Source: Adineta vaga
Lineage: Eukaryota > Animalia > Rotifera
NCBI GenBank assembly: GCA_021613535.1
Contig: CP075497.1
Location: 2,418,001 to 2,482,000, forward strand
DNA length: 64,000 bases
Direction of reading: 5' to 3'
Shown here: piece by piece, positions 28,104-40,500 of the stretch
Layout: each line of letters opens with the position of its first letter
How positions within the stretch are numbered: the first letter of the stretch is position 1
Notes under the pieces: model-generated
What the model was told of the DNA's origin: nothing
The model's input: only the letters and a program-made list of their open reading frames with translations
Database searches by the model: none
Made by a program: the position numbers and the translations under genes

Positions 28104-28162
28104 GAGTGTTTTCGAAGGAGTCCCTAACATCGAACGATTATCTTATTCGTAGAATTGCTAGA

Positions 28163-29836
28163 ATGCCAATTCAATCACCTATTTATTTAGTTGCTAGTGG
28201 TGATTCTCGACTTGCTGCTAATCAAACATGTTGGGATGCACAAAATAAACTCGAACAAGCACTTGGTAAAGCACTAGAATCACTTGGTCATACAATCAAA
28301 CGTGCGCATGAATATGATGAAATAAAAAAACATGGTTTTATCGATAGTCAACGTATGGGCATGAAAGTTTTCGCTAATTTACCATCCGATGATGTACCAT
28401 TGATCGTTGCTGAAGCTGTTTGGCAATATTCACATCATGTTTTAGCTGGTTTAACAACACATAAAGGTCCAATTTTAACTTTAGCAAATTGGTGTGGACA
28501 ATGGCCAGGTCTTGTTGGAATGTTAAATTTAAATGGTTCATTAACAAAAGCTGGAGTGAAATATAGTACTTTATGGTCAGTCGATTTTACTGATGAATTC
28601 TTTGTTAATAAACTAAAAGAATGGTTGGAAACGGGAAATATTCAACATGATGTATCACATGTACGAGCATTGAAACAATTTAAAGCGATTCCAGATGATT
28701 TGGAAAAAATTGGACAAAAAATCGCCCAAGATATTTTGAAAAACAAAGCAATTATGGGTGTATTTGATGAAGTAGGAAAAGAAAAAAAACGATAGAAAAT
28801 TTCCAATTTAAATGATGTATTTTAGGGTTGTATGGGAATGTATAATGCAATAATACCCGATGAACTTCTTCATAAATTAGGTATTTTTAAAGAACGTCTT
28901 AGTCAATCGGCACTTTTCTATGAAATGCAAGTAACAAATGATGAAGAAGCTCGTGCTGTTTATAACTGGATAAAAGAAAAAGGAATGAAATTTGATTTAA
29001 AAGATCAACCAAATGATGCAACGGATTTAACTGAAGAACAAATTCTTTGGCAATGCAAAATGTATATTGCTGCTGTTCGTTTAGCAAATGATTTCGGATG
29101 TGATCTAATTGGTATTCAATATCAACAAGGTTTAAAAGATTTAGTTCCTGCTTCTGATTTAGCCGAAGGTTTATTGAATAATGTCGATCGACCACCTGTA
29201 AAAGATCGTTCAAATAAACGAATTCTTTTTGAAAATGCAGCTGTACTACACTTTAATGAAGTCGATGAATGTGCTGGCGTTGACGCATTGATTACCAATC
29301 GTGTTTGGAATCAATTAGGTTATCCACCTGAAACAACTTTGCATGATGTTCGTTATGGCGAAGATTATGATGGTGTATTTACATGGGTATTTGAAATATC
29401 AGGCGCTGTTCCACCTGAACATTTAATTGATGGTTATAAAGGTGCTTTTAGTTTACGTCAGCCGCCGATGTATTTTCATAAAGGTGGTGGTACAATTCGT
29501 GGTGTTTCAAAACCAGGTGAAGTTGTTTGGAGTCGAATTTATACAGAAGATAATCGTTTAAAAGCTGATCTTGGTCGAGCACGTGTTGTGAAATTACCAA
29601 GCGAAGAAACTGAACGACGTTGGCGTGATACAACACCACAATGGCCTATTATGCATGCTCAATTACTTGGTGTTAGTCGAGATCAATTAATGGCAAAACA
29701 TAAAGCAAATCATGTTCAAGTTGCTTATGCTCCCGATGCTCAAGGTGCACAAAAAGCTTTAGCAGCTAAAGCAGCCTGTTTTCAAGCATTGGGTATTGAA
29801 GTTTTCATCTGTGGTACTGAATCCGGACTTGATTAA
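28163..29836 (+). CDS. L-fucose/L-arabinose isomerase-related protein of bacterial type, 2 exons (intron 28772-28825); HGT candidate
   Basis: Motifs [57 protein letters not shown]|[71 protein letters not shown]. The 54-nt intron is phase 0. Confidence 0.88.
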
Positions 29837-30953: not shown

Positions 30954-31085
30954 AAAACCGTTTTTATTTTCAGTGTGTTCTATTTCCAAACTCACTCTTA
31001 CTCTTCTCATATGCATATTTGCCCAAAACTACACTTTATTTTCGAAAAATACCAAAAAGCATATTTTTCCACCTATCAAAGACTG

Positions 31086-34000
31086 CTATAACCAAGAGAA
31101 GCACACGTTTTTCTTATTTTTCTTCAATGTGTTCAGGTGTTTTGCACCTTCATCACCGATTTGATTGCCTTCGAGACTGAGCATGGTGACTGTCTGTGTG
31201 AAATGGAAAAGATGAATGAGATATAGAAATGAAGAGGTTCATTTAGTCTTACTGAGTTTTTTCCCAGTCCTTTACCAATGTATTGTACACCCTGAGCGCC
31301 AATTTTATTGTGGTCGAGACCGAATGCGGTGATTGTCTGTGTGAAATGGAAGAGATGAACGATATATAGAAACGAAGAGATTTATTTAATCTTACCGAGT
31401 TTTTTTCCAATGCTTCAGCGATGTAATGTGCACCTACATCACCAATTTGGTTTTCGGAAAGATTGATTACGGTGATTCTCTGTATGAAATCGAAAAGATG
31501 AATGAGATACAGAAATGTAGATATTCATTTAGTCTTACTGAGTTTTGTCCCAACGCTTCAGCAATGTAATGTGCACCTACATCACCAATTTGATTTTTGC
31601 AGAGGTAGAGTTGTGTGATTGTCTGTATGAGACGCAAAAGATGAACGAGATATAGAAATGAAGAGATTAATTGTCTTACCGAGTTTTTCCCCAAACCTTT
31701 ACCAATGTAATGTGCACCTACATCACCAATTCGATTGCTGGAGAGAGTGAGTCTGGTGACAAACTGTATAAAATGAAAAAGATGAACGAGATATAGAAAC
31801 GAAGAGATTCATTTAGACTTACTGAGTTTTGTCCCAATCCTTCACCAATGTATTGTGCACCTACATCACCAATTTGATTTCCGAAGAGGCAAAGGTCTTT
31901 GAGTGTCTGTATGAAATGGAAAAGATGAATGAGATATAGAAGTGAAAAGGTTCATTTAGTCTTACTGAGTTTTGTCCCAATGCTTTACCAATGTATTGTG
32001 CACCTATATCACCGATTTGATTTGCGATGAGACGAAGTTCTTTGAGTGTCTGTATGAAATGGAAAAAGATGAATGAGATACAGAAACGAAGAGATTCATT
32101 TAGACTTACTGAGTTTTGTCTCAATCCTTCACCAATGTATTGTGCACCTACATCACCAATTTGATTACTCCCGAGGTCGAGTTCTGTAAGTGTCTGTATG
32201 AAATGGAAAAGATGAATGAGATACAGAAATGAAGGGATTCATTTAGACTTACTGAGTTTTGTCCCAATGCTTCAGCAATGTATTGTGCACCTACATCGCC
32301 AATTTGATTGTTGCAGAGGTAGAGGACTTTGAGTATCTGTATGAAATGCAAAAGATGAGTGACATATAAAAGTGAAGAGATATATTAATTAAAGTGTTTT
32401 TCGAAAACAAAGTTTGGTTTCAAGTGAATTTTTGCCGTGCTGAAGTCAAGCAGTATTAGTTTATTATCGTTGTTTTTCTCGTAGAGAGGAGTCATGGAAG
32501 AATAGATTGTTGGCTTGCTTGCTTGTTTGTTCAATTCCTTGTGTCCGCACTTCACTGATTAGGCCAATCCAATAATAGGGTTATACAAAGAAACTACTTT
32601 CCATAGAACCTGACCTGGAGGTAATCAAAGAAGCGAAATGTGGATATTATATTAGTTCTAGCTAATTATTAACTAATAATATTTCAAATGGAACTTCACC
32701 AAAAGGTAATAAAAGGGGCGAAGTCAGCGGCTGAGATTATTTTTGATTAATTATTTATTATATATTGAGTAACAGTGAGTTAATAATTAACTAAGAACAT
32801 CCTCTATAAAATCTGATCAACGAGTAATCGAGAGTGGGAAATTCAAATGTGAGGTTAATTTTAGTTGGTCAATCATTTATTAATCAAAATAAATATTTTG
32901 CTGAAAGTTTCAAAACACCATTGCTACGAGGTAGAGCGTACCGAATCCTTGGACAAGCGTTATTTGTAGATGTAGGAAAATTTATGTTCGATTTTTAAGA
33001 AAAAGAGAATGTAGTAGAAACAATACATGCCAGAATAGAAGTTTTTTCATACTGCTGCGGTTCATTCAGTCGTAACTACGTTAATTTCAGGAATGGTTTG
33101 TAAAATAAAGAAGCGATACAGTGATTTAACTATGCATTTCGAAATGAAAATTAGCGAGAAAAGTTTGTATAAATATTGTAGTGTTATTTTTGGCAAGAAA
33201 CTATTGAGTCACTTGTACGATGTCAATGAATTAGTAGGTTTCGGATGTTGAAAGCTGACGGGTAATTAACTTGTATAAGAAAGTTTCACGGTCTTGAAAA
33301 TATAAAACAAGAAAATAATTTGAAGCGAAGATCTATAATGGAGGAGCTTAGGGTCTCAATATGATATATATGGTTGTTAGAATTGAATTTTCTGGTACTG
33401 TGAATGAATCATTTTATAATGTACTTGGGATGAAAAGTTTAATAAGGTTGTTCCAAATATATACTTTAAGGTTAATCTGAGATTTTAACGCCTAGTCGTT
33501 GATACATATACAATCAGTTTCCTATTTACACTTCAAAAAGTTGATCCGTTTATAATGGGTTGTTTTCTCCTCAGAGATACTGAAACTTTACATAATAGTG
33601 TGATCCGAACCACAGATTGTATCCTTCGCTCCACTTTTCGTCATCGATAATCGAGCAATCTCGTTCTACAAAAGGCATTAATTAAGTTTGTTTTTAAATC
33701 ATTCAAACTATCTGATTTTTTCAATCATTTTCAACTCAATTCTCCAAATAAATGTCTATCTGTTCAAGAGGTCTACGAAAAATGACCGAATGAAAAGTGA
33801 TCTACGTTAATTTACAGATACGAGAATTAGTCTAATTCAGAAAAATCGGCTTAATTGAAAATGCAACAGGTATTTGAGATTCTTTTTATTATGCATTTAA
33901 CTAAACTAAACAGGTAACGCGGCGTAGTAGCCGCTGATCTTCTACTGAAAAGACATCATCAGATCCCTCCTATTCCTCAAAAGAAAGAAATAAAAATTAT

Positions 34001-37000
34001 TTCATTTGAATAATTCAATCATTTGATAATTTATCTTAATCTTTTGCTCATACTCATTTTGCTCCCTAAAATCTTCTCAGGCTAACGCCTAGTCGTTCGT
34101 CGGCCTCCTCCCCGGTCGGTCACTTACAGCTAGCCGTTACCATGGCAGCCTCCATTATGCCTTTCACTTTTGACTAACTTTCAAAGCGAATAATTACGTT
34201 TCTTTTCATTGTTGCTCCCGAAGTAGGGATTTTCCATTTATTTTATTATCAAACCAAACTAGATAAAAAGTTTTATTTTATGATTTGGCGTGAAAAAAGC
34301 ACCCATCATAGTGCTTCATATGTTTAGGATACCATTGGTATAGTCGATTTCTCTCTAGCTAATAAGATGGAATTGCACTGACGGACATACTCTATCGCAA
34401 CATATTTCTGCTGAAATCCTGTCGAAAGACCTGACGTGTCGTAGCTAACAGCCCGATAATCAAATTAAGCTCTACCACGTACAAATATCATAATGTAAGA
34501 TATACTAAATTTTTTTGTGTGAGCTCCTAAACTACTATCTTCGCACACAACACATGCAAGAATAGCGTTTAATTCACTACCTTCTACAAAAGATTTTACG
34601 AAAGATACAGAAAAATATCTCTTTTAAAAAGAGAAAGGAAGAAGACAAAGCTCAGCGAATAAGAAAAAAACTAACCTCAGATTCGAGTTCCACGACCTCG
34701 ATTACTCCGGATCGATTGTCTTCGGATAATCATGGTTCAGTTTTCATTCATTTGCAAAATGCAGCAAGCTGATTGGATTAAACAAGCTCAAGCACAAACA
34801 AACTTTTAGTATTTTAACGACCGAGTTTACGGCGCTATACCGCATTCTTTCAGAAAAGGGAGTAATAAAAAAATAATGAAAATTATTGATTATGAATATT
34901 TTAATCTGCCCCTTAGCAAAATCTAAGAAATAAAATGTAACTTACTATATCTTTCTTTAGCAGATAAGAAGCAACTATTTCCATATCAGCATCTATCATT
35001 CCGTTCTCTGACAAGTTTAAGTCTGGTCGAAGTCGCTTTTGACTCATGATTTGTTCTAATTTTGAATTTTCGTACTTCGGTGGTGACGATAATAAATTTG
35101 TCGTTGTTGTTTTTGATTCTGAAAAAGATCGATAAAAGATGATTCTATCCTACAAATGATATCTAAAGCAAAATTCTTCTCCTAGCTACACTGTAGAAAA
35201 AATGACAGCAAAATAAATGAACTATCAATTTTTAATTCAATAATAATATTGATTATATTGTTTATTTTAGAGGGTCCATGAATCCATCGAGCATAGTCAT
35301 ACTATAAAAATTTTAAAATTGATTGTCAAAAATCATGCTATTTATTTTTGTTGAACTATGAAAATTCAGTTAGAAAATGATCTGGAGAAATTGAAATGGC
35401 TGATTTTGCTCAGCTCTCTAGATGGACTATCTTTTGGCATATAATAGTAAAAGATGCTTTGAATCGTTGAAATAAAATGCGCACAGGTGATTTGAAATAA
35501 CTTAAGAAGAGTTCTTTGATGATGAAGAAACAGTGGTTAAAAGTTGTCACGGGCTAATTTTGGTGTGGAACATCCAAACACTAAAAATTTGTATATCGTT
35601 GATAGTTTTTATCACTCTTATTGCTTCCTCTGGATCTGAGGTAATAATATCTTTATGCAGAATATATATGTAATGAATTTTATTTTGTAAAATTCGAAGA
35701 TATGAAATAATAGATAGAATAATTCGTTAATGTGTGACGAGATGGAGGAGTAGCACTACTACCACTCTCGATATACTAGATGTTTATTCGAGCTACTTCA
35801 ATATTCCAAATCCTGCCATACAACATAAAACGTTCGCTTTATATTTGCACTTACGAGAAAGAGAAAAGAACAGAAAAGGGATGAAGTATTCACTAGCATA
35901 TTACATAAGAGTAACATCATAATAGCTACGGACACTAACATACCAGATAACGATTCGATTTTACACAACGATGCATTCCGTAACACTAAAAAAAAGATTA
36001 GCACATTCTTCCTATATAAAGAAGGCGTAGAAAAGTCAAAGAAGAGGAAGCATGTATATCTGAATCAGAAAGGACACCCAACCATTATTGGCACAATGTA
36101 CTATTCCAAATTTACCTGATGATGAACGTTTAAGCAAGATTCGAAACGGTCGCCCTAAGTAGCTTGAAATAATCTTTGAAACTCATCCTGAAAAATTCCA
36201 AGTGTTGCCAGGTTTTGGTAAAAAAATGGAATTTTTCATAAAAAAGTATCAAAACTCAGGACTCCTTTTCTAGCTTTAGTACCTCCACTTTGGATATCAG
36301 ATAGAGCGAAAAAAAACTGCGTATAATTGATCCAAAGTTTTGGGTGATTTTATGAAGGTTTTACAACGAAAATTGGCAAGCTTTATGTATATAAAAATGG
36401 TTTTTGTGCACCTCTAGTCATTCTATGTGCATAATTTTATCGCAATTGAATGAACTTTTAAAAAGGTTCTGCAGATATCTAAAAGCTTTCAAATGCGTCG
36501 AAAGTGAAAAAAAAGCATGAAAATTCGACAGAACCTTCAAAAGGCTCTCCGTTATATCCAGCAGAAGATCCTTTAAAGGTTCTGCAAATTTTTTGAATCC
36601 CTTTTTTGGAACTTTTAATACATTTAAAATCTTGTTGACGTCTCCAGAACCTTTTTGATGGTTCGGTAGATTACCTTTTTTTTCTTTAGTTTGTGCCACA
36701 GCCGCATTCAACGATTCTCTCGCTTTTTTTACAAATATTGCCATTATTATAAACATAGAACCAAAAAGACACCACCCGATGGTCTTAATAATATAAAATG
36801 CAATCACCGCAACCGCTATAAGTAATAGAGCCGCCTCAATTAGCGTTATTTTCGTCAATGCTTGTACACCTGCACCAATTCCAACACCAATTACTGTAGC
36901 GTTTGCTTTTAAACTTTCCATTGTTGATCTCGTGGTTCTTAATGTGGCGTTAATCTCGTTCCCAGTCGCCTTTATTGTTGTATTAGCAGTGTTTGTCGCG

Positions 37001-37029
37001 TTTGTAACAGCTGACGTGACGTTTCCCAT
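31086..37029 (-). CDS. Membrane-anchored RI-type leucine-rich-repeat protein, about 435 aa, 11 exons: 36675-37029, 34946-35118, 32253-32336, 32110-32193, 31966-32049, 31823-31906, 31680-31763, 31539-31622, 31396-31479, 31253-31336, 31086-31193
   Basis: All junctions are GT-AG and frame-compatible. Exon 1 ends AAG|gtaatc (phase 1) and exon 2 starts ttcag|AA. Exon 2 encodes an LRR cap (YENSKLEQ...LNLSENGMIDADMEIVASYLL). Exons 3-10 are 84-nt 28-aa LRRs (xLxxLxLxxNQIGDVGAQYIxxxLxxNS). Exon 11 ends NVCFSWL*. The exon 1-2 and 2-3 links across long introns are inferred from splice signals and phase. Confidence 0.8.
31140..32380. repeat. Tandem array of nine ~143-bp units, each an LRR exon plus a 57-60-nt near-identical intron
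   Basis: Exon starts on the minus strand are 32336, 32193, 32049, 31906, 31763, 31622, 31479, 31336 and 31193. The intron consensus is roughly gtaagactaaatgaatctcttcatttctatatctcattcatcttttccatttcatacag. Confidence 0.97.
36460..36656. mobile_element. Putative MITE-like element (~197 bp) in intron 1 of the LRR gene
   Basis: Perfect 12-bp terminal inverted repeat AAAAAGGTTCTG (36460-36471) / CAGAACCTTTTT (36645-36656), with internal copies CAGAACCTT (36529) and AAAGGTTCTG (36575). No clear target-site duplication. Confidence 0.45.
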
Positions 37030-37559
37030 AGTTAGAATAGTGAACTGTTATATAATTTTAATCTAAAGAATAAATTTTGAAAGCTTTGGTTTTTTTAAGA
37101 TTGTTTATTTCAATTTTGAAATTTTTATTTTATGATTAGATATAATTTTTAACGAGTTCTTAAAGATACGAGGGAAATATGTTTCTATGCTGTCATTTCC
37201 GACACTTTCCTTCTTTTTCCGTGGAATTTCGACCATTTTGTGAGTATGGTGCTTCGACTTCGAAATGTAAGAGCAATTATTTATGTTGAAAAAATTACTG
37301 AGAAAAATGCAAAACAACAGACTGTATTCACATCCTTATTCAAATTACGAATTCGGTCTCTATCGACTGATAGCAAAATACGAAGTAAACAAAATTCCTT
37401 TCGAGCAGTTTTAGTTTTATATCAATTTGTTCTAAATAATCAGAACAACACACGTTTTCTTGTTTGGAAAAGATATACAATGCGAAAACATATTCTAAAC
37501 TACATAATACAGAAAAAAAAGGAAGTTATGCAATTATAATGCTGAAATCATCTGACACG

Positions 37560-40500
37560 TTAAGGTGAACGTTCACGTTTACGTTTTGGTGTTGTAGTAG
37601 ATAATACTCGTCGAGGAGTGCTCACTTCCATCGGTTTTAAACGACGTTCAATATCCGCAAGTACAGGCTAAACAAACAAAAAATATCTTAAATTTTTATT
37701 CATAAAATTTAAAAATAATTCTACCATCAAATATTTTTTCCATGCAAGATGTTCTTCTTCATCATAATCATCTACATTTTGTTCATTAGATTCTGTAACA
37801 TTTGGAAAATTTTCTTTTAATACACGATATGATGCCAATGTTTTAATATTTAATTTACTAAGACAATAAGCAATATTTCCTCGTTTTCGATCATCACCAC
37901 TAAATCAGAACAGAAAAATAGATAAATTAATCAATGAAATTGTCTTACCATGCTTGTTTAAATTGTCGACAAAGTCGTTTGACTAAAATCTCGCAATGGC
38001 GATCGTTTTTAATGTACGAAAACAAATGAGAAATAATATCTTGAAAAACATCTTTTGAACATATGGTATTCATTGATAAACGAGATATAATATCAGGCAA
38101 AACATTGAATAAAGCCATGCCACGTTGTCGTAATGATAATTCATCGAAGAAATGTTGAGCAATACTTGATATTGGCGTATGAGAATGAAACAAACATAGC
38201 GCTATTTCACTAATATAACCACGAACTTTAATCATTTCTCGAAGAATGAGTATCGCAATCGTACATAATGCTGTTTCACCAACATTCAAATCTTTATCAT
38301 GAATTTGTGCATAAAATTGCGGTGTAAATGGTTCGATAATATTTGGATGTCTACATCGAAAATCAATATTTTTCTTTAAAAGCAAGATTTCTGATTGAAA
38401 TACTTACCGAAGAAGTAAATCACCAAGTGAAACAATCAATGCTGAACGTACAGATGAATATGGACATAATTTCGAGATTTCAAAGATTCGATCGACATAT
38501 TTTGAACACACAGTTGGTGATACATACATCATTCGAGTACATGTTAAAATACTTGTTAAAACAAGATTTTCATCATATAATGAATGATCTTCATGAATAA
38601 ACTAAAATAAAATCATAAAAATGAATAATTGAAATGGAAAAATAGATTCATACTGATTCCATCCATTTATCAATTGAATAAAAAAGTGAATTAGATTGAA
38701 ATAATTCTTTTTCCAGTTGACTAAAATCTGAATGTTGTTGCTGTATAAAATGATTATCTTCATGATGATTTTCTTGTTGTGCAAGATTTTCTTCATCTTC
38801 ATCGTCAAATAATTGTCGTGAAACAGATGAGGATGTTTCACTATCATCAATATCATTATCATCATCATTAAGAACAATGTGTATCTTCGCTTTTTTTGTC
38901 TTTTTTATTGAAGATAAATTTGTACTTTCATATTTTTGTACTTGATGAGTAAGAAAAGCATTCATTGATACTAATAATCGAATGAATTTAATTCGCCATG
39001 ATTGATCGATGAGTTTCGATTGAGAATCAAAATTTTCAGTTGGCCAATTCAATTGTTCAGCTAAATTGCGAAGAAATTTCATGATAAAATCATCGGCTGA
39101 GATATGTGAAGGTTCTCGAAGAAATAAAATATTGAAAATTTGCTTCATACAATTGACCCATGATTGATGATTGACATCTGTCGATGAATCAAGTAATTTT
39201 TTCGTAATTAAATCATAAAATTCATTGGGAATTTCATTCGATGATTTGATTTTTAATAAATTCGAAAGAATTTGTATTTGATAATGAAAATAATCTAAAC
39301 TATATCGATCAATTTGTCGTACAAGACTTTGAAGAATTAAATTTAAACGTGAAGATAAACGATGTTTGGTATCGTAAGAAATGACGAAAGAGATTAATTG
39401 TAGAAAGGAATTTTGTCTTTGTTGAATTTGTTTGAGAAATTCATCTGTTACAAGTTTTTTCGAAGATTCAGTTGTTATTTTCAAATAATAATCAAGAAGA
39501 ACTTCAATAAATGAAAGAAAACTTGCAGTTGGAGATGTTGATTCACCAAGAAGTTGTTTAAGAATATGTTCAAATGTTAATGTTAAATTTAAATCGATTT
39601 GATCGAGAAGTTTTTCAATAATTCTTTTCGAAGAAATTCTAAAAAAAGAAAATCAATAAAATTAACATTTTCTTCTAGATGTAAGAAGATTTCTTACTTT
39701 TCATCCGTCGCTTCATCATCAATTTTTAAACAAATTCTTTTAAATCCATTAATGATTGCATTGGAGATGTTCTTATCATTCGACCAGATTAATGAAAATA
39801 AATATTTTTCTAATTTTTTATAAACATTTGATTGACATTCAAATGTTGACCACTAAAACAAGAATACGAGTTGAAAGATTAGTTCAAGACAATTGAATTA
39901 TACTTACTAAAACAAGAAAATCAATGATTTCAAGTACGTCACTTGTTACTTTTGAACTGAGTAGATAAAAAGCATCTTTAGCAAGAAATCTTCGTAGATG
40001 ATTACAAAAATCTGTTGCATTATGTAAATAAGTACTTAAAGAACAAACCAAAAACATTTTCAATTAGAAAATTTCTTTTTTCTTCTACATACACAAGTTT
40101 CGATTGTTTAACCATATTATCAAATAATCGTTTGACTTTTTCCATTGGTTCTTCATCATCAATCACATCGATAGTATTAGTAATTGCTAAACAAGTATTA
40201 AGTCGACTTTGTAATTGAATTAATTTACTCATTTCAACATTATATTTTTCAAATGATGCTAATGATTCATCTGTTGAATACATTGAACAAACACGTTGTT
40301 GTTGTTCGACAACACGTTCAAATAAAACATGTTGATCATCGTGATCATTCTCCTTGTCACTATCAGTTATTTTATCAATATCAATCGAAACATTATCAAG
40401 TTGCAATGTTTGCCCTAATAATCGTTGTAATTGAACTAATTTATTCATTTCAGAATTGTATTCATCAAGCATTGCATCAATTGGAAGAAACTAGAAAAGA

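Follow-up and report, generated by a model that had tools for sequence, protein, structure and literature searches.

A 64,000-nucleotide stretch of the genome of the bdelloid rotifer Adineta vaga (contig CP075497.1, C6:2418001-2482000; hereafter the window) carries a minus-strand gene whose C-terminal part is built from tandem exons, each encoding one leucine-rich repeat (LRR) of the ribonuclease-inhibitor (RI) type. The exons are spliced in RNA, and the codons for the concave face of the repeats have changed far more than silent DNA. We think it probable that the array forms the C-terminal recognition domain encoded by a single, conventional, expressed gene with a membrane anchor, that its RI-type LRRs were duplicated and then positively selected on their concave face, and that the gene is a head-swapped relative of genes joining an ADP-ribosyltransferase (ART) to LRRs.

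Contigs from three RNA runs in two studies (X1 and X3 of study P1, X7 of study P3) and from a DNA run (X5) were mapped on 31060-37050. The spliced RNA contigs define a coding sequence (CDS) at 37029-31086 with 11 exons and 435 aa, which joins into a single open frame of 1308 nt (local frame check). The array section at 31086-32336 consists of eight exons of exactly 84 nt and a terminal exon. A first-pass annotation of this DNA had listed nine LRR exons by their ten-residue starts (from ILKVLYLCNN to TITAFGLDHN and TVTMLSLEGN); all are present, on the minus strand. The eight 84-nt exons and phase-0 introns of 57-60 nt that it described were borne out as well, with every junction confirmed by RNA contigs. 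All eight short-intron junctions are spliced at the predicted positions in X1, X3 and X7, which shows that the array is transcribed. The same contigs splice out 32337-34945 (2609 nt) and 35119-36674 (1556 nt), which adds two 5' exons. The features, in the order of transcription, are as follows.

36675-37029, minus strand: coding part of exon 1, ATG at 37029, 118 aa and one further base; covered by spliced contigs (36675-37050), in which it is joined to 35118.
35119-36674, minus strand: intron 1, 1556 nt, GT..AG; joint 35118/36675 in X1, X3 and X7, absent from X5.
34946-35118, minus strand: exon 2, 173 nt, a linker and a degenerate N-terminal cap LRR (…LNLSENGMIDADMEIVASYLLKKDI); RNA joints at both ends.
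32337-34945, minus strand: intron 2, 2609 nt, GT..AG; joint 32336/34946 in X1, X3 and X7.
32253-32336, minus strand: LRR exon 1, 84 nt, ILKVLYLCNNQIGDVGAQYIAEALGQNS; RNA joints; LRR_6 E=0.0015.
32110-32193, minus strand: LRR exon 2, 84 nt, TLTELDLGSNQIGDVGAQYIGEGLRQNS; RNA joints; LRR_6 31.4 bits against a cut-off of 23.4 bits.
31966-32049, minus strand: LRR exon 3, 84 nt, TLKELRLIANQIGDIGAQYIGKALGQNS; RNA joints; Pfam LRR_6.
31823-31906, minus strand: LRR exon 4, 84 nt, TLKDLCLFGNQIGDVGAQYIGEGLGQNS; RNA joints; Pfam LRR_6.
31680-31763, minus strand: LRR exon 5, 84 nt, FVTRLTLSSNRIGDVGAHYIGKGLGKNS; RNA joints; Pfam LRR_6.
31539-31622, minus strand: LRR exon 6, 84 nt, TITQLYLCKNQIGDVGAHYIAEALGQNS; RNA joints; Pfam LRR_6.
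31396-31479, minus strand: LRR exon 7, 84 nt, RITVINLSENQIGDVGAHYIAEALEKNS; RNA joints; Pfam LRR_6.
31253-31336, minus strand: LRR exon 8, 84 nt, TITAFGLDHNKIGAQGVQYIGKGLGKNS, the most divergent scaffold of the eight; RNA joints; no single-exon Pfam match.
31086-31193, minus strand: terminal coding exon, last LRR TVTMLSLEGNQIGDEGAKHL followed by a basic tail KKNKKNVCFSWL; stop codon TAG, 31088-31086; RNA joints.
31194-32252, minus strand: span of the eight short phase-0 introns, all removed in RNA contigs.
32252-32194, 32109-32050, 31965-31907, 31822-31764, 31679-31623, 31538-31480, 31395-31337 and 31252-31194, minus strand: the short introns, GT..AG.

All ten joints occur in X1, X3 and X7 and none in X5, whose contigs span the locus contiguously. 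No second near-identical copy of the gene was found in the 100.8-Mb, six-contig genome, either by DNA search with the array or by protein search with exon 1, so the joined forms are most likely mRNA and not an intron-less retrocopy. The 5' untranslated region extends past 37050, and the 3' untranslated region runs on below 31060 from the terminal exon, which begins TVTMLSLEGN. The protein thus reads as a hydrophobic orphan N-terminus, the cap LRR, eight LRRs and a terminal LRR. The eight array introns measure 59, 60, 59, 59, 57, 59, 59 and 59 nt, all GT..AG and phase 0, and the final ~55 nt of intron 2 look like them. Tandem Repeats Finder reported a period of 143 with 8.7 copies and 81% matches at 31143-32381. 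X7 also holds an unspliced 452-nt contig at 35341-35792, within intron 1, which may be a precursor, an independent transcript or DNA carry-over.

The array encodes RI-type LRRs. Each array exon, read in frame from its first base, gives one 28-residue repeat; the unit consensus is TLTxLxLxxNQIGDVGAQYIGEALGQNS, and L7, N10, I12, G13, G16, Y19, I20, L24, N27 and S28 are invariant across the eight units. Pfam LRR_6, the RI-type model, was the best match for seven of the eight exons taken singly, one of which passed the cut-off by itself. When a profile was built from the eight units, its best whole-length matches were NOD2 (5irm) and ribonuclease inhibitor (1dfj, 4peq). The class assignment follows from the 28-aa tandem repeats (eight plus cap and terminal) and from this similarity to RI-type models and structures.

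We compared the eight 84-nt units with codons 3, 4, 6, 8 and 9, the structurally pre-specified concave face, as the x set. The mean pairwise difference was 0.119 in introns and 0.231 in exons. The introns had been called near-identical; they are alike, but only at 81-97% identity, with 2-11 differences between pairs. With introns ~12% diverged, the last duplication or reshuffling of the array was not recent. Codon diversity was 0.30-0.69 in codons 1-9, except at the invariant L7 (0.08), and 0.00-0.35 in codons 10-28. It peaked at codons 6, 9, 8 and 4 (0.69, 0.68, 0.56 and 0.55), so that the x set holds the four most diverse of the 28 codons; 2 of 98280 five-codon sets score as high. At positions 1 and 2 of the x codons diversity was 0.604, with 3.10 parsimony steps per site counted on the scaffold-plus-intron tree. 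The corresponding values were 0.117 and 0.46 for introns (Mann-Whitney p=9e-7) and 0.186 and 0.83 for non-x third positions (p=1e-4). The proposal that variation concentrates at the x positions and exceeds that of the introns is therefore upheld. Units 2 and 4 are the most similar pair, and even they differ at 9 of the 15 bases of their x codons but at just 7 of the other 128 (Fisher 8.5e-7).

We then fitted a fixed-sites codon likelihood model in which x and non-x codons each have their own omega but common branch lengths. It gave an omega_x of 8.2 when introns helped to calibrate the neutral rate (likelihood-ratio test statistic (LRT) 50.5 against omega_x = 1). Exons alone gave 3.85 (LRT 16.2, p=6e-5), and codons 1-10 only, with the interleaved Leu/Asn codons as reference, gave 2.46 (LRT 4.2, p=0.04). 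The same contrast between x sites and neutral sites appeared in 15 of 15 arrays measured. In younger arrays x-site diversity is ~2-8 times intron or silent-site diversity; in two old, saturated ones the values come together. We read the x-site excess as most probably the result of positive selection on the concave face once repeats had been duplicated. Divergence from repeat to repeat within one protein records past selection after duplication, in which every new repeat was reshaped, as happens in the making of any specific LRR surface; an ongoing arms race, diversification between individuals, or allelic or combinatorial diversity does not follow from it.

Several points weigh against this reading. 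Within the x codons, the Nei-Gojobori ratio comes to no more than 1.14 (pN 0.58, pS 0.51), because these codons are saturated at all three positions and offer about three silent sites. Diversifying selection at the x positions, as first proposed, is thus backed by an omega_x of 2.5-8.2 with omega=1 rejected, but the naive dN/dS is borderline, a ratio of 1 or less having been named in advance as speaking against it. The test on codons 1-10 is marginal and implies ~1.9-fold higher silent divergence there than in the rest of the unit, which makes some homogenisation of scaffold and introns possible. Intron 3' ends are common to paralogous arrays and to an array of another organism, so the introns may be constrained, and the intron-calibrated omega is an upper bound. 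The selection tests also assume one tree for eight short repeats.

Two other accounts of the x-site excess draw on these points. In the first, only constraint is relaxed: solvent-exposed x residues drift neutrally, the scaffold is purified, and the introns stay alike through splicing constraint. The near-neutral pN/pS and the kept intron 3' ends are what this account would predict. We nevertheless find it very improbable, since x-site replacement runs 3.7-fold above third-position change in the same exons (parsimony) and neutral drift cannot outpace the silent rate. The rejection of omega=1 without introns and an intron diversity that is uniform over the interior within the array (0.11-0.13), not limited to splice signals, tell against it too. 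In the second, the array is a mosaic of concerted evolution, with old repeats and old x residues. Conversion or unequal exchange would homogenise scaffold and introns, purifying selection would spare the x residues, and the surface would be preserved and not diversified. The local silent excess in codons 1-10, relative to the whole-unit tree, fits such a history, as do introns less diverged than non-x third positions (0.12 against 0.19; p=0.046). So do sister arrays that can have identical introns beside different x residues (array L008 has 12 identical introns, yet its units differ from one another at codons 8 and 9) and the published frequency of gene conversion in this genome (PMC3846280). 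Yet Leu codons 2, 5 and 7 sit among the x codons at 3-nt spacing and are mostly CTC (20 of 24 third positions are C); with such interleaving, no conversion tract could spare the Leu codons while skipping the x codons. Moreover, omega_x is still 2.5 with the local reference, and the non-x sites and introns gave no signal of a recombination mosaic in two flat tests of low power (GENECONV-like p=0.48, PHI-like p=0.63). We therefore judge the mosaic unlikely. Leu-codon third positions were also tried as an age marker and were not decisive: the family as a whole keeps CTC at L2 and L7 and TTG at L24, and these codons may be constrained.

Exon 1 encodes an orphan hydrophobic head. It begins MGNVTS, and its homologue begins MGAIVS, so that a GxxxS myristoylation-type motif is kept in both. 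The first 45 residues are Thr/Asn-rich, with five N-x-T sequons. Residues ~46-102 are strongly hydrophobic (Kyte-Doolittle) and are followed by KKARE...KEKK. The exon is unique in the genome by protein search, and searches for the N-terminal domain in Pfam, by ESM Atlas feature search and among same-genome paralogues returned nothing. Among 1.8 billion representative proteins there was one homologue (172 aa, 65% identical), on a 1.6-kb environmental metagenome contig too short to reach an array. AlphaFold2, run on the two-sequence alignment, predicted two long helices at moderate confidence (pLDDT 72). The ~55-residue hydrophobic region would anchor the protein in a membrane. By the positive-inside rule, the basic flank of a membrane segment faces the cytosol. 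The strongly basic stretch after the hydrophobic region accordingly places the LRR domain there in our prediction, and the ten LRRs are most likely cytosolic. This would hold for either form of anchor: a hairpin of two helices that leaves a myristoylated N-terminus in the cytosol, or one membrane span preceded by a short, glycosylated ectodomain. Topology and cytosolic placement are predictions from sequence alone, and the exon-1 model is of only moderate confidence, which adds to the points counted above against the overall reading. As a separate observation, the exon-1 open frame runs 50-85 codons past the donor both in the window (36421-36674) and in homologue P0001 (residues 119-172). The read-through parts are partly alike (…GSGDVNKI… and …CSENVDKI…), which may be chance between close species or a retained-intron isoform.

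The array belongs to a large family. DNA search found many same-period arrays in the genome at 64-66% identity. The unit profile gave 1471 first-look candidate LRR exons on all six contigs, and all 150 of the 150 scored have E<1e-6. Among the loci fetched, the longest array has at least 22 exons, each 84 nt in length; introns measure 55-59 nt, or 77-94 nt in one subfamily. Two kinds of upstream open reading frame (ORF) accompany them.

F-box ORFs, ~0.4-0.9 kb upstream of six long LRR arrays: L016:1223-1645 (minus strand), L018:8895-9242, L025:6470-6904, L029:5527-5856, L030:6264-6569 and L032:6971-7360.
ART ORFs, on the array strand and 2.8-3.5 kb upstream of arrays: L020:7679-8527 with array L002 (C1:4.474-4.480 Mb), and L027:9165-9998 (C1:10.32 Mb).

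The F-box ORF is the same (…MYTFSTLPIELVYRILDHL…) upstream of all six arrays (PF00646, 22.2 bits against a cut-off of 20.5 bits) and appears to mark a large F-box/RI-type-LRR family. The second kind, upstream of two contig-1 arrays, carries a NAD:arginine ADP-ribosyltransferase domain (PF01129, 35 and 47 bits). ART ORF and array are separated by a cap exon, a homologue of exon 2 in the window gene, and these loci are probably candidate ART-LRR fusion genes.

The window gene looks like a head-swapped member of this ART-LRR subfamily, given its exon-2 homology, its best array match and a common long gap. Over 53 aa, exon 2 shares 42% identity with the exon at C1:4475101-4475259 (E=8e-6 genome-wide, 1e-13 pairwise), and a weaker match stands in the equivalent position at C1:10326427. 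The array of the C1:4475101 locus is the best DNA match to the window array, and a gap of 2.3-2.6 kb separates cap exon and array in both genes alike. Pfam found no ART domain (PF01129) in window exon 1. The window array shares with the F-box/LRR and ART/LRR arrays of the same genome the module of an 84-nt exon and a 55-94-nt intron and the hypervariable x sites. It differs from them in its head, a genome-unique hydrophobic exon in place of F-box (PF00646) or ART (PF01129), and its units are more diverged from one another than those of most sister arrays. No F-box remnant was found between 37300 and 31000 (tblastn with three sister-array F-box ORFs), and the RNA exon chain leaves no room for an F-box in the gene. 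Nor does intron 2 hold an extra LRR unit or F-box remnant.

Intron 2 does contain a dispersed repeat of ~200 nt (34665-34885), with at least 35 genome copies at 69-75% identity and a tripling of DNA-run depth over it. Many of these copies sit 2.5-3.5 kb upstream of a single-LRR-exon array elsewhere, and their orientation relative to the array is the same (examples are C5:15679789, C6:12891735, C1:3221194 and C4:13248416). It could be a small mobile element moving with the family, or a common regulatory piece.

Outside this genome, a degenerate DNA pattern of the unit scaffold matched nothing in metagenome contigs in a search for an orthologue, and a scan with an exon-1 protein pattern was likewise empty. 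A 2620-bp activated-sludge metagenome contig (L037) carries eight 84-nt LRR exons with 65-77-nt introns, variable at positions 4, 6, 8 and 9, and an intron 3' end (…TTTTCCATTTCGTACAG) that nearly matches that of the window array. Its array, found with the 125-aa frame of units 2-3 and 51% identical, was considered as an orthologue and set aside as a relative. Because L037 has the same exon design, the module is not confined to this genome. A lineage-specific expansion of LRR genes in Adineta vaga has been mentioned in general terms only (Arkhipova et al. 2013, PMC3846280), and full-text literature searches found no description of this architecture in rotifers.

The first-pass annotation had gone further and proposed an immune receptor that diversifies by varying repeat number, order or exon usage, through unequal crossover, gene conversion or exon skipping, in an asexual animal. 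We consider this distinctly improbable. The symmetric phase-0 exons would keep any deletion, duplication or skip in frame, the x sites carry a signature of positive selection, and the family is of great size. Blocks have been duplicated very recently in sister arrays, and the brown-algal ROCO genes are analogous (PMC3341825). But no signalling or effector domain was found: Pfam detected no NACHT, F-box or any other domain in the RNA-defined exons 1 and 2, and no TIR, death-fold or kinase domain in the RNA-defined gene. None of the 22 NACHT matches in the genome falls in the window, so the N-terminal NACHT or NB-ARC domain that defines an NLR is missing, and the LRRs are probably cytosolic. The rebuilding route fared no better. 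The contigs of the three RNA assemblies contain just the full sequential splice chain with no skipped LRR exon (a weak negative, as contigs can drop rare forms), and the X5 contigs hold no sequence variant at the locus. The flat recombination tests and the ~12% divergence of the introns point away from recent reshuffling. Spare or inactivated LRR units, intronic and antisense ones included, were not found outside 31050-32400 (blastn and tblastn of the units against the 64-kb window). Since the immune reading draws on analogy and family size, we treat it as a hypothesis, and an immune function of the gene would be speculation. The annotation's interpretation is thus partly supported.

Linkage to NACHT genes was considered for two other arrays and dismissed, because the nearby matches lie on the strand opposite to the array. 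One of them is a TIR-NACHT-HEAT ORF at L031:7454-10000 on the plus strand (C5:12.411 Mb), an 849-aa frame with TIR, NACHT and HEAT repeats, head-to-head with a diverged opposite-strand LRR array. None of the NACHT genes looked at in this genome is fused to single-LRR-exon arrays.

Among known systems, the type I arrays of Ectocarpus ROCO genes are the closest match in phenomenon. Each of their phase-0 exons encodes one LRR, the exons are equal in length, repeats have been duplicated, and positively selected residues map to the concave face (Zambounis et al. 2012, PMC3341825). Their exons are 72 nt (24 aa, plant-specific type) on a ROC-COR GTPase, whereas the window exons are 84 nt and of the RI type. 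Ectocarpus also has inactivated or antisense LRR exons in introns, unlike the 64-kb window. The candidate selection signal here, an omega_x of 2.5-8.2 beside a naive pN/pS of 1.14, is measured between repeats of one gene.

Most human NOD/NLRC genes have one 28-aa RI-type LRR per frame-preserving exon, and this layout has been considered as a prerequisite of alternative splicing (Hoss et al. 2019, PMC6642158). The window array resembles them in its 28-aa/84-nt repeats and its strict, frame-preserving one-repeat-per-exon design, and its unit profile matches the NOD2 LRRs at positions 2-27. In contrast, the window gene has no NACHT or effector domain, and its introns are tiny (57-60 nt) and mutually alike. 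In NLRs the border between exons reportedly falls within the beta-strand; in the window array it comes just before the strand. In zebrafish NLR-B30.2 genes the LRRs are extensively duplicated, one domain per exon, with sequences 'not particularly variable' (bioRxiv 10.1101/022061).

RNH1 shares the RI-type consensus, the profile match (1dfj, 4peq) and Pfam LRR_6. RNH1-type exons have a size of 57 aa. RNH1 is soluble and LRR-only with alternating 28/29-aa repeats (Hoss 2019), whereas the window protein has uniform 28-aa repeats and a predicted membrane anchor. Lamprey VLRs likewise concentrate diversity on concave-face LRR residues, but they are extracellular, of another LRR class, and somatically assembled from flanking cassettes into an incomplete germline gene. 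The window germline gene is complete and conventionally spliced, with one splice chain in three RNA assemblies (whose contigs can hide rare isoforms) and no spare cassettes in the window.

On the reading we favour, positive selection on a duplicated recognition domain, the array would have grown through tandem duplication of a 143-nt module (an 84-nt exon and a ~59-nt intron) that is used genome-wide. After duplication, concave-face codons would have been replaced faster than silent sites while scaffold and introns drifted slowly; replacement above the silent rate argues for positive selection for a new binding surface. An orphan membrane-anchor exon may have replaced the enzyme head, with the cap exon and the long pre-array intron kept from ART-LRR relatives. 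The protein would sit in the membrane through its ~55-residue hydrophobic region with ten cytosolic LRRs, its N-terminus either myristoylated (GxxxS is kept in the sole homologue) or forming a short glycosylated ectodomain. The LRRs are expected to form a curved solenoid in which residues 3, 4, 6, 8 and 9 of each repeat line the concave beta-sheet. As the x residues differ in every repeat, together they could give a single surface, fixed and specific, for binding another protein. As to the role of the protein, our best guess is an intracellular adaptor or sensor tethered to the membrane.

The one-LRR-per-exon design is already known from vertebrate NOD/NLRC and brown-algal ROCO genes; here an RI-type array stands on a novel, predicted membrane-anchor head. 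On its own, the gene is a clean, RNA-verified example of the contrast between binding-face and silent change, with an orphan membrane anchor paired with a sensor-like LRR tail. For now it stands as one well-characterised gene within a lineage-specific expansion and a candidate immune receptor at most by analogy. The x-site signal and the head-swapping merit a family-wide study. Should orthologues bear out the selection signal, brown algae and vertebrates would be joined by this rotifer, and probably by its relatives, among the lineages in which LRR surfaces diversify through single-repeat exon modules. Here such modules would be combined with swappable heads, a testable handle on germline recognition diversity in a largely asexual animal. 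A broader and rather doubtful idea is that bdelloid rotifers run a large germline-encoded intracellular recognition repertoire from an interchangeable 84-nt LRR exon module. Its concave face would be recurrently selected, and its arrays would be set on different heads for F-box degradation, ADP-ribosyltransferase modification or membrane anchoring. The window gene would then be a tethered sensor or decoy against pathogens or mobile elements.

The neighbours of the gene are of other kinds. The next upstream gene on the same strand (37945-38385, minus strand) has a condensin Cnd1 domain (103 bits) and is an ordinary housekeeping neighbour. At 28106-29836 on the plus strand, two long ORFs ~36 nt apart match the N-terminal (24 bits, below the cut-off) and C-terminal (31.7 bits, above it) domains of L-fucose isomerase. 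They represent a bacterial-type sugar isomerase beside the LRR gene that may have been horizontally acquired.

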